DNA of 64,000 bases from Asterias rubens (Eukaryota), in assembly GCF_902459465.1 (NCBI RefSeq), contig NC_047063.1:17856001-17920000 (forward strand). The letters are read 5' to 3'. A model generated the notes under the pieces. That model was not told where the DNA came from, did not search any database, and worked only from the letters and a program-made list of their open reading frames with translations. Of the stretch, positions 28,158-31,100 are shown piece after piece. How positions within the stretch are numbered: the stretch's first letter is position 1; every line of letters starts with the position of its first letter. A program made the translations under genes and the position numbers.

Positions 28158-31100
28158 TCAATGCTTGATGATGTCACTCTTGACGTACTCGACACTCCTC
28201 GAAGGATCAGTTGGGAAATGTCTCTGACACTGAGTCATCAGTCTCTTTAAAGCCTGGATAAATAAATGAGGTTGAGAAAGAAACAACGATCAAAATGTCA
28301 TCAAAATCATAGAAAATATCCTCATCAAAACCACCAGATCTGCCCAGAAGAAATCTTCATAGGACGGTTAGAGGCAGTGGACACTATTGGTATTACTCAA
28401 AACAATAATTAGCATAAAACCTTACTTGGTAACGAGTAATGGGGAGAGGTTGGTAGTATAAAACATTGTGAGAAACGGCTCCCTCTGAAGTGACAAATTT
28501 TTCAAGAAAGAATTAATTTTCCACTAATTTGATTTTGATACCTCAGATTTAGAATTTGAGGTCTCGAAATCAAGCATCGACATGATAATGTCAAGCCCAT
28601 TATTTATATATTTATTTTTTAAATGTTTGCATACCTGGATAAACTTTCTTTGTGTTTCATCGTTCAGCACATCTGTTGTTATTTGCATTAAGGAAAACAT
28701 CAAACAATTCATGCCGTTACTTAAAAAATACACACGGCTGAGTTACTTAAAGCCATTGGACACTTTTGATAAACAGTATTGTCCAAGGCCCACACTTCGT
28801 GTATCACAACTTACATATAAAATAACAAACCTGTGAAAATTTAGGCTCAATTAGTCATCGGAGTCGGGAGAAAATAACGGGAAAACCCACCCTTGTTTAT
28901 GCACGTTTCGCCGTGTCATTAAATGTGTTTAAAATAAATCTGTAATTCTCGATATCGAGAATTGATATGTTTGAATGTTTTCTCAAAAAGTAAAGCATGT
29001 CATGGAATATTTCAAGAGAAGTCATTCAACATTGCCTTCTGTAAACCCTGTAAGGTTTTATGTGAACTTTTAATTTTTGTTCTGTTCCGAAAGTGTCCAA
29101 GTGTCCAACTGCCATAGTTGCTCTCCCATGATGTCTGAAAAAACACATTTATAGTGCTGACCTAGCTCAACCCTCTTACTGTCTGACCATTCACGACCAT
29201 CCACTGATTTTGAACGCTATATGTAATTTACCAGCCTGCAATATGACATCATGTAGTGAATACATCCACACAGTAACACAGTTCTGTGCATAGTAATACT
29301 CTGTGAACCCTTATAAGGTGCTACATAATTGGGTCTCACAATTCACCACTGCAATAACCTATCTTCTGAAAGTTTGTATATACTCAGTGCCTAGAGTACC
29401 TTGTTTGGTAGATGTAGCGCTACATAAGACTTTGATATTATCATTATTATTATCATTATCAAAGTTGCTCCACCTTACACACCCTCAGCAGTTGAATGGT
29501 TTCAAATGGGTGGTCAACTCAACAAAATTTTATAACAAAAACTACAGAGGTTAATTTCTGCTAGAAAAATCTATACTTTCGACTAATTATTCATGGTTGG
29601 TATCTTTATGTTCAGCCAATCAGATTTCAAAGGATACGAGCCACATTCTTGGAGAAGATTTTTTCTCGACCGGTACGAGCGTGGATTCCCACCATGGTCA
29701 CACCGATGGGCCAGGGTGCATTGCCAATAGCCATCTGGAGATATGTATCACTTGCCTGTCAACAAAATAAATTACATTATATTATTTTTTTGTTTTTACC
29801 CAAAACACCGATGTATGTTAGCACTGTACAATCAGTACTTCCCCCTGCACCCTGTGAAATAAAAATATCACAGGCATATTACTCTTGGGTGGGATTCGAA
29901 CCCACGACCCTTGCAATTCTAGAGCAGTGTCTTACCAACTAGACTACCGAGATGGCCCGGTAGCTAGAGGCAGCTCCGATCCTATGTTTTGGCAGACGGT
30001 ATTGCAAAGATATAATAAATGTTGAATCGGGGTAAAGAATATTTTTAAAAAAATTAATATTTTTTTAAAATAAAGTGCGTCTCAAATTTTTTAAAGAAAG
30101 TTATTACAAGAGGTGGTGTGAATGGCCTATCGAGGAAACACATCATAGAAGAGGGTACATCATTATTCTTTTTGAAAAGTATTTTGGTTCCAATTCTCTT
30201 TGAGTTTTCAAGACACACGTCATGAAGGGTTGGCACGTTATTTGAGTTTGTAAGAGTACATTCTGTTAAATTCATTCCAATCTTCTAGTCCATGTGTTCC
30301 ATTCCAATGTTTTATCAATTCGGAAAATCCAGATACCATTTTTGCAAAGATTTCATGCAGAAATCTGCTCCTACTTCTGTTATTTTACAAGTAATTTGTG
30401 ATAAAAGAGGGATACTGCAGTATTTTTATAAAAAAAATTGAGAAAAGTACCACATTTATTGTCTTTGAATTTTTTTTTCTTCCAACATACATGTACATTC
30501 TTTGGAACATGTCATAAAGGAGTCTAATATGACTATTGCTTTCCATTCCACATAAGTCCTGCAGATAATCTTGAAAAAAAAGCTTTCATTTTGGCAAAGA
30601 TGACGGTATTTCAGAGGTAATCCTTTTGATATGACTACCAATGCTAGATCATGGATTTTTTTAAAGCGTCAGAGAAAAGCTGGTCGTTGGATAAAAAGAT
30701 AAAATACAAAAATTAAACACTACTAACCTTGACATAATCTCTATCCAGCATGTACTTGACGATGGTTACCAGACTGTCCAGCAAATCTGGGGGCAACGTC
30801 TGCAAAAAATAAAAATAAAACAAAGATTAAAGGCAGTAGCCACTATCGGTAATTACTCAAAATAATAATCAGCAGAAAACCTCACTTGGTAACGGGGAGA
30901 GGTTGATAGTATAAAAGATTGTGAGAAACGGCTCCCGCTGAAGTGACATAGTTTTCGAGAAAAGAAAGAACTTTCCACGAATTTAATTGCAAGACGTCAA
31001 GTTTAGAACTTGAGGTCTCGAAATCAACCATCTAAACGCATCCAACTTCGTGTGACAAGGGTGTTTTTTTTTCTTCATAGTTATCTAGCAACTCCGACGA

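Follow-up and report, generated by a model that had tools for sequence, protein, structure and literature searches.

The PRPF18 gene of the starfish Asterias rubens contains one intron, intron 8, whose ends resemble those recognised by the minor (U12-dependent) spliceosome. Its presence in the gene of a second-step splicing factor raises the questions of whether it genuinely belongs to the minor class, whether it was inherited or gained, and whether it serves to regulate its host. Our analysis indicates that intron 8 is very probably a genuine GT-AG U12-type intron, ancestral to animals and precisely lost at least three times, with no special function needed to explain it. All positions given below are those of the window, meaning the whole 64-kb stretch of DNA that was analysed.

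The host gene was established by direct reading and gene assembly, which give 10 coding exons on the minus strand, from 35052 to 28158, and a 347-aa PRPF18 orthologue. The product of this gene model is identical (100%, all 347 aa) to a RefSeq protein named 'pre-mRNA-splicing factor 18-like' from Asterias rubens (P0165), which carries PRP4-like (PF08799) and Prp18 (PF02840) domains, and the starfish protein shares 58-86% identity over its full length with named PRPF18 proteins of echinoderms, vertebrates and a spider. In the exon model, exons 1-3 occupy 35052-34984, 34263-34186 and 33628-33527; exons 4-6 occupy 32643-32530, 32100-31885 and 31454-31314; exons 7 and 8 occupy 30799-30728 and 29755-29638; and exons 9 and 10 occupy 28672-28635 and 28253-28158. 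Exact spliced mapping, done independently, returned identical junctions, and those of intron 8 are already right in the RefSeq annotation. While PRPF18 was labelled a major-spliceosome factor in the original prediction, late catalytic splicing factors are generally regarded as acting in both spliceosomes. The prediction's naming of the gene is borne out by the full-length match to the RefSeq protein with its two domains.

Intron 8 maps exactly to 28673-29637 on the minus strand (965 nt, phase 1), where it interrupts the His codon (C/AT, the slash marking the intron) of a conserved 14-residue Prp18 motif, as had been claimed from the letters alone. Exon 8, at 118 nt, encodes 39 residues plus the first base of this codon and ends in AAG AAT GTG GCT C; exon 9, at 38 nt, starts with AT GTG CTG AAC GAT GAA, supplies the rest of the His codon and 12 further residues, and is followed by a U2-type donor, GTATGC. 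A library search with 1041 matches identified exon 8 as the best-conserved stretch of the PRPF18 protein. The other eight introns of the gene are all phase 0 and U2-like, with the donors GTAAGA, GTTTGT, GTTGGT, GTCGGA, GTGTTT, GTCAGT, GTTAGT and GTATGC, so that intron 8 is both the only phase-1 intron of the gene and the only one with a GTATCC donor. Minor introns are known to be biased away from phase 0 (PMC10639083), and the phase of intron 8 fits this bias.

Read with the exon edge, the intron opens CTC/GTATCCTTTGAA and closes TTTTCCTTAATGCAAATAACAACAG. Its U12-type 5' splice-site box, GTATCCTTT, lies at 29629-29637 on the minus strand, and this donor is the sole occurrence of GTATCCTT on either strand of the 64-kb window (30036-30076, in intron 7, was masked for window motif counts and BLAST). 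The branch-site box, TTTTCCTTAAT, lies at 28687-28697 on the same strand and includes TTCCTTAAT at 28695-28687, the second A of which leaves 15 nt to the intron end. The branch adenosines are presumed to be those at 28689 and 28688, 15-16 nt from the 3' splice site. Among the nine PRPF18 introns, intron 8 alone has no polypyrimidine tract, the pyrimidine fraction at positions -17 to -3 being 0.33 there versus 0.67-0.87 in the other eight. By a composition-based estimate, the joint chance of finding the extended donor and the branch box within one GT-AG intron is about 2e-7. Both elements resemble those of scored human and mouse minor introns, for example GGCGTATCCTTT and GCCTCCTTAACC in Table S2 of Olthof et al. 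2019. The assertion that donor and branch site match the U12 consensus was thus correct for both boxes when read on the minus strand.

The RNAs that would be required to remove such an intron are encoded in the starfish genome (417.6 Mb), where full-length Rfam matches, all above the gathering scores, were found for U12 (126 bits), U6atac (124), U11 (92.1) and U4atac (89.8). Within the branch-site box, TTTTCCTTA pairs perfectly (9/9) with TAAGGAAAA in the U12 RNA of the starfish itself, versus only 5-7 bp for the other PRPF18 introns, formed through A/T-rich runs. At the donor, TCCTTT pairs over 6 nt with the AAAGGA box of starfish U6atac, and CCTTT pairs over 5 nt with the 5' end of starfish U11. 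In the mechanism we propose, U11 and then U6atac would recognise the GTATCCTTT donor, and U12, paired with TTTTCCTTA, would bulge out a branch adenosine lying 15-16 nt before the CAG acceptor. Removal would not call for a polypyrimidine tract, and excision would join C to AT, restoring the His codon of the 14-residue motif. On these signals, intron 8 presumably does use the minor spliceosome. The shares of sampled words covering exon 8, intron 8 and exon 9 were 0.12-0.17 in presumed RNA runs versus 0.31-0.56 in DNA runs; word shares are an indirect measure, for which about 0.09 is expected of fully spliced RNA before repeat-derived words are considered. These values are compatible with removal of intron 8 and silent on both junction and efficiency. 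Instead, the RefSeq model and the contiguous GCx CAT GTx of intron-less species together set the exact junction, at which a universally conserved His codon is restored.

Between these signals the starfish intron has accumulated repeats. A MITE-like interspersed repeat of about 355 bp (28746-29100, no strand assigned) has a decayed 3' terminus and begins 50 nt from the branch box, in agreement with the original prediction of a MITE at about that distance. Further copies lie in the window at 17306-17661 and 27009-27370 (87-88% identity), and 40 copies were scored in the starfish genome at 89-92% identity from about 5200 first-look candidates. The element is non-coding and about 355-365 bp long, and its intact copies carry a 19-nt terminal inverted repeat; its target-site duplication would be either TA or TTAA. 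A second interspersed repeat fragment, at 29298-29459 (no strand assigned), shares 83-87% identity with 21287-21456 and 21643-21754. By these matches, about half of the present starfish intron 8 is later transposon insertion. Such insertion would be tolerated together with the signals at both ends of the intron, and it accounts for a length of 965 nt in starfish as compared to 64-269 nt in sponge, Trichoplax, crinoid and coral.

To place the intron in a wider context, the gene DNA of named orthologues was mapped exactly, exon by exon, in a comparison of 11 species, and intron positions were set on one protein alignment. Orthologues of amphioxus, tunicates, jawless fish, insects and plants were not among the 120 matches listed. 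An intron with a GTATCCTT donor is present at the identical alignment column and phase in 7 of the 11 species: the starfish, the sea urchin Lytechinus pictus (1166 nt), the crinoid Anneissia japonica (162 nt), the spider Stegodyphus dumicola (670 nt), the coral Porites lutea (269 nt), the placozoan Trichoplax adhaerens (94 nt) and the sponge Dysidea avara (64 nt). A sea cucumber gene model in GenBank (Apostichopus japonicus), read through the exon end, has a U12-type donor at the same site, bringing the echinoderm classes with the intron to four (starfish, sea urchin, crinoid and sea cucumber). The GTATCCTT donor is invariant in seven species other than the starfish, at the DNA level or by read-through, and in each intron-bearing orthologue no other intron of the gene has such a donor. 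All six orthologous introns (Lytechinus, Anneissia, Stegodyphus, Dysidea, Trichoplax and Porites) contain a TCCTTAAC-like box 11-16 nt before the AG. This box is one base off the consensus in sponge (TCTTTAAC), Trichoplax (TTCTTAAC) and coral (TCTCTAAC), and the U12 status of the intron in these three species therefore rests mainly on the donor.

The remaining four species, Danio rerio (zebrafish), Ptychodera flava (acorn worm), Magallana gigas (oyster) and Lingula anatina (brachiopod), have no intron at this site. In each, the codon is contiguous and lies within an exon of exactly 52 codons, or 156 nt, the sum of starfish exons 8 and 9 (118+38). The single 156-nt exon that had been expected for human is thus verified in the DNA of the four species; in human, PRPF18 is absent from the minor-intron tables. 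The phase-0 major introns on either side are kept in all 11 species. An alignment of intron positions across PRPF18 orthologues, which the original prediction had proposed, thus finds the intron at the same position from sponge to echinoderms and absent from four species.

A broader sample was obtained by using the 39 residues of exon 8 as a query against prokaryote-style ORF calls on eukaryotic contigs, which read through exon ends and therefore assay the intron site directly. About 22 cluster representatives read ...VARIL followed by F, S, L or H, the literal translation of C/GTATCCTT. In about 61 others the intron is absent here and the next intron is kept, and a few have other donors at the same site. 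A lineage with an intron at the same site but with U2-like donors (P0147) has a protist transcriptome as its source. The read-through fragments come mostly from ENA/Logan assemblies, Apostichopus and one dictyostelid being named.

Judged by gene DNA from the 11 mapped species, the intron was already present before sponges and bilaterians diverged. Given the sister relation of echinoderms and hemichordates and the position of the spider among protostomes, the distribution implies an ancestral intron and at least three losses. These would have been independent, precise deletions in the lineage leading to zebrafish, in that of Ptychodera, and in oyster plus Lingula, each leaving the two flanking major introns untouched. 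On this reconstruction, loss is not special to vertebrates, having occurred in the acorn worm, oyster and Lingula as well. Of two options put forward earlier, the first, an ancestral intron lost in vertebrates, therefore agrees with the finding of the same intron in sponge, Trichoplax, coral, spider and four echinoderm classes.

The mode of loss is also that of minor introns in general. All four named non-U12 states are deletions and none is a conversion, and the minor intron is conserved in 7 of 11 species, as opposed to 11 of 11 for its major neighbours; lower conservation, and deletion rather than conversion, match the general trends reported by Larue and Roy 2023 (PMC10639083). The same authors estimate that the chordate-echinoderm ancestor had about 25% more minor introns than human, and starting from such an ancestor, losses like that of PRPF18 intron 8 are expected. 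Ancestral minor introns would persist without special function in minor-intron-rich lineages and be lost sporadically elsewhere. Arguing from this literature, we infer that intron 8 has persisted neutrally, as have other ancestral minor introns in minor-intron-rich lineages.

A different reason for persistence deserves consideration, namely that the intron has been kept for a regulatory effect: PRPF18 output would be held down where minor splicing is slow or regulated, and the activity of the minor spliceosome would thereby be coupled to the second catalytic step. If intron 8 is retained, the frame reads CGT ATC CTT TGA and stops after three codons, with both a conserved 10-residue C-terminal segment and a further exon junction still downstream. 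Unspliced RNA should therefore be non-productive, which makes it possible for minor splicing to limit PRPF18 supply. That at least seven lineages have preserved strong signals over more than half a billion years also speaks for such a switch, as does an existing proposal in which unstable U6atac controls minor introns as molecular switches (PMC3728624). Should PRPF18 act in both spliceosomes, the arrangement would amount to a feedback loop. Against this idea stand the at least three clean losses, in vertebrates, the hemichordate and lophotrochozoans, with no sign of replacement; conservation below that of the major neighbours, a pattern explained by neutral evolution according to Larue and Roy (PMC10639083); and the absence from the gene of a tandem U12 donor element of the USSE type.

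The last point was addressed by counting the donor-like motif RTATCCTT, which occurs 3 times in the window versus about 6.5 expected. Within the gene it is found at 29637, the donor itself, and at 34676 in intron 1, about 5 kb apart; no USSE-type tandem U12 donor-like motifs were found in the PRPF18 gene, and an autoregulatory element of this type was rejected. We consider a switch of this kind unlikely. The fuller version, in which the intron of non-vertebrates is kept by selection and minor-spliceosome activity (for example, the U6atac level) gates a second-step factor of both spliceosomes, seems a shade less likely still; if true, vertebrates, hemichordates and lophotrochozoans would have dispensed with the coupling loop.

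The second of the earlier options, a rare gain, would mean either an insertion within echinoderms or several parallel gains at one favoured site. It draws on the fact that the nearest outgroup read, Ptychodera, and zebrafish are both without the intron. However, position, phase and signals are identical in sponge, Trichoplax, coral, spider and four echinoderm classes, and for so rare an intron type to arise seven times in parallel at the same nucleotide would be far less parsimonious than three or four precise losses. With the intron shared by non-bilaterian orthologues, lineage-specific gain is highly improbable and was rejected. Equally improbable, and likewise rejected, is a chance look-alike, an ordinary U2-type intron removed by the major spliceosome: although either spliceosome accepts GT-AG termini, the motif statistics and the uniqueness of the donor in the window, the invariance across phyla of positions +3 to +8, which is not demanded of U2-type donors, the poor fit of CTC/GTATCC to the U2-type consensus together with the missing polypyrimidine tract, and the presence of four minor snRNAs with matching recognition boxes all argue against it.

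An ancestral minor intron in PRPF18 is not evident from the catalogues of mammals. Neither PRPF18 nor Prpf18 is in the MIDB human and mouse minor-intron tables (Olthof et al. 2019, PMC6717393, supplements 2-4), where SNRPE, used as a control, is present. Judging by the published list and by zebrafish DNA, human PRPF18 appears to be without a minor intron. In the papers searched, no link was found between PRPF18 or Prp18 and a U12 or minor intron, the co-occurrences being irrelevant. The original prediction had made the novelty of the intron depend on its not being already catalogued, human included, and as far as human is concerned PRPF18 is not among the tabulated genes. For starfish the situation is probably different. 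In a survey of more than 3000 genomes, Larue and Roy 2023 (PMC10639083) classified annotated introns with intronIC, made the calls available at introns.info and described Asterias rubens as a minor-intron-rich deuterostome. As the intron is annotated and canonical and its genome lies within that survey, starfish PRPF18 intron 8 has probably been catalogued there in bulk.

Compared to canonical GT-AG U12 introns (PMC10639083, PMC6717393), intron 8 has the same donor and the same branch box near the AG, likewise has no polypyrimidine tract and is not in phase 0. As in those cases, an old 'information-processing' gene holds one minor intron and otherwise major ones, in an organism with the four minor snRNAs. 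None of the differences is mechanistic; what differs is the host gene, PRPF18, which is not listed among the minor-intron genes of human and mouse.

A more specific comparison is offered by U11-48K and U11/U12-65K, which are reportedly autoregulated via a U11-binding splicing enhancer, in work attributed to Verbeeren et al. 2010; tandem U12 donor-like repeats in these systems are said to activate an upstream major 3' splice site. PRPF18 resembles them in being a splicing-machinery gene whose expression could in principle depend on minor-spliceosome components. It differs in having no tandem RTATCCTT, the motif being instead the donor of a constitutive-looking intron.

Intron 8 is thus an ordinary, well-supported case of a thoroughly known intron class, and its novelty is small. 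It opens no new question, and cross-regulation between the spliceosomes through PRPF18 is speculation. Its value is as a clean case for minor-intron evolution, in which an intron can be traced directly in DNA to the ancestor of sponges and bilaterians and at least three exact deletions can be followed. PRPF18 appears to be a minor-intron gene in many invertebrates and not in human or mouse, and this matters both when vertebrate minor-intron gene lists are extrapolated to echinoderm, cnidarian and spider models and when minor-spliceosome knockdowns in those models are interpreted.

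Among the protein hits of the library search (P0001-P0150), eukaryotic contigs with prokaryote-style ORF calls carried reading frames that continue past exon ends into introns. Because these calls run past exon ends, the residues that follow a conserved exon show both whether an intron is present and which donor it uses. In such read-through ORFs, ARILF after the conserved exon 8 corresponds to a C|GTATCCTTT donor. A separate group of PRPF18 fragments (P0118, P0142, P0107, P0140, P0141 and P0104) is non-animal-looking, with HERS… type sequence and AT-rich flanks, and contains an intron at the codon position of starfish intron 8, with differing donors. 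Within this group, ARKFY or ARKLY read-through indicates a GTAAGT-like or GTAAAT-like donor, ARMLF a GTATGC donor and ARIHH a GTATCCAT donor. The closest full-length relative is P0147, from a protist transcriptome, and a dictyostelid is also among the relatives. These other-donor introns could be U12-to-U2 conversions of a still older intron.

A second motif resembling a U12 donor, of the AT-AC type, was found within intron 1 of the starfish gene (ATATCCTTTT at 34676 on the minus, or sense, strand). RTATCCTT was observed three times in the window as compared to ∼6.5 expected, indicating that the motif at 34676 occurs at chance level. It lies ∼5 kb from the real U12 donor, and the two show no tandem arrangement. 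An additional repeat family, distinct from the MITE-like element of intron 8, is present in and around PRPF18 as near-identical pseudo-ORF pieces, including in introns 9 and 6. The minus-strand pieces lie at 25891-26046, 26346-26531, 28425-28523 and 30872-30982 and are typified by a 21-residue stretch. Elsewhere in the window, 40001-42000 displays strong compositional asymmetry (GC skew 0.24, AT skew 0.16), and long stop-free, serine-rich and low-complexity stretches on the minus strand at ∼41400-42000 coincide with it.

In the coral Porites lutea, the PRPF18 gene call spans 85 kb (L013, the Porites PRPF18 locus, 301-85029), and nested within it on the other strand are two further called genes, including one for a Laminin_G_3 protein (21050-27225). 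Since the introns located by exon mapping are all <2.3 kb, the 85-kb extent of the annotation probably results from a distant 5' exon or from a merged model. In the sea cucumber Apostichopus japonicus, a deposited PRPF18 model of 273 aa (P0036, GenBank PIK45573.1) leaves the U12 intron unspliced: its reading frame passes the donor (…KNVARILLKLVL) and then reaches a stop, placing the truncation exactly at the U12 intron site. A newer RefSeq model from the same species (P0154) is complete at 337 aa. The truncated model is an example of minor introns missed by annotation pipelines. Read-through residues provide a cheap assay for intron presence across taxa, for which genome annotation is not needed.
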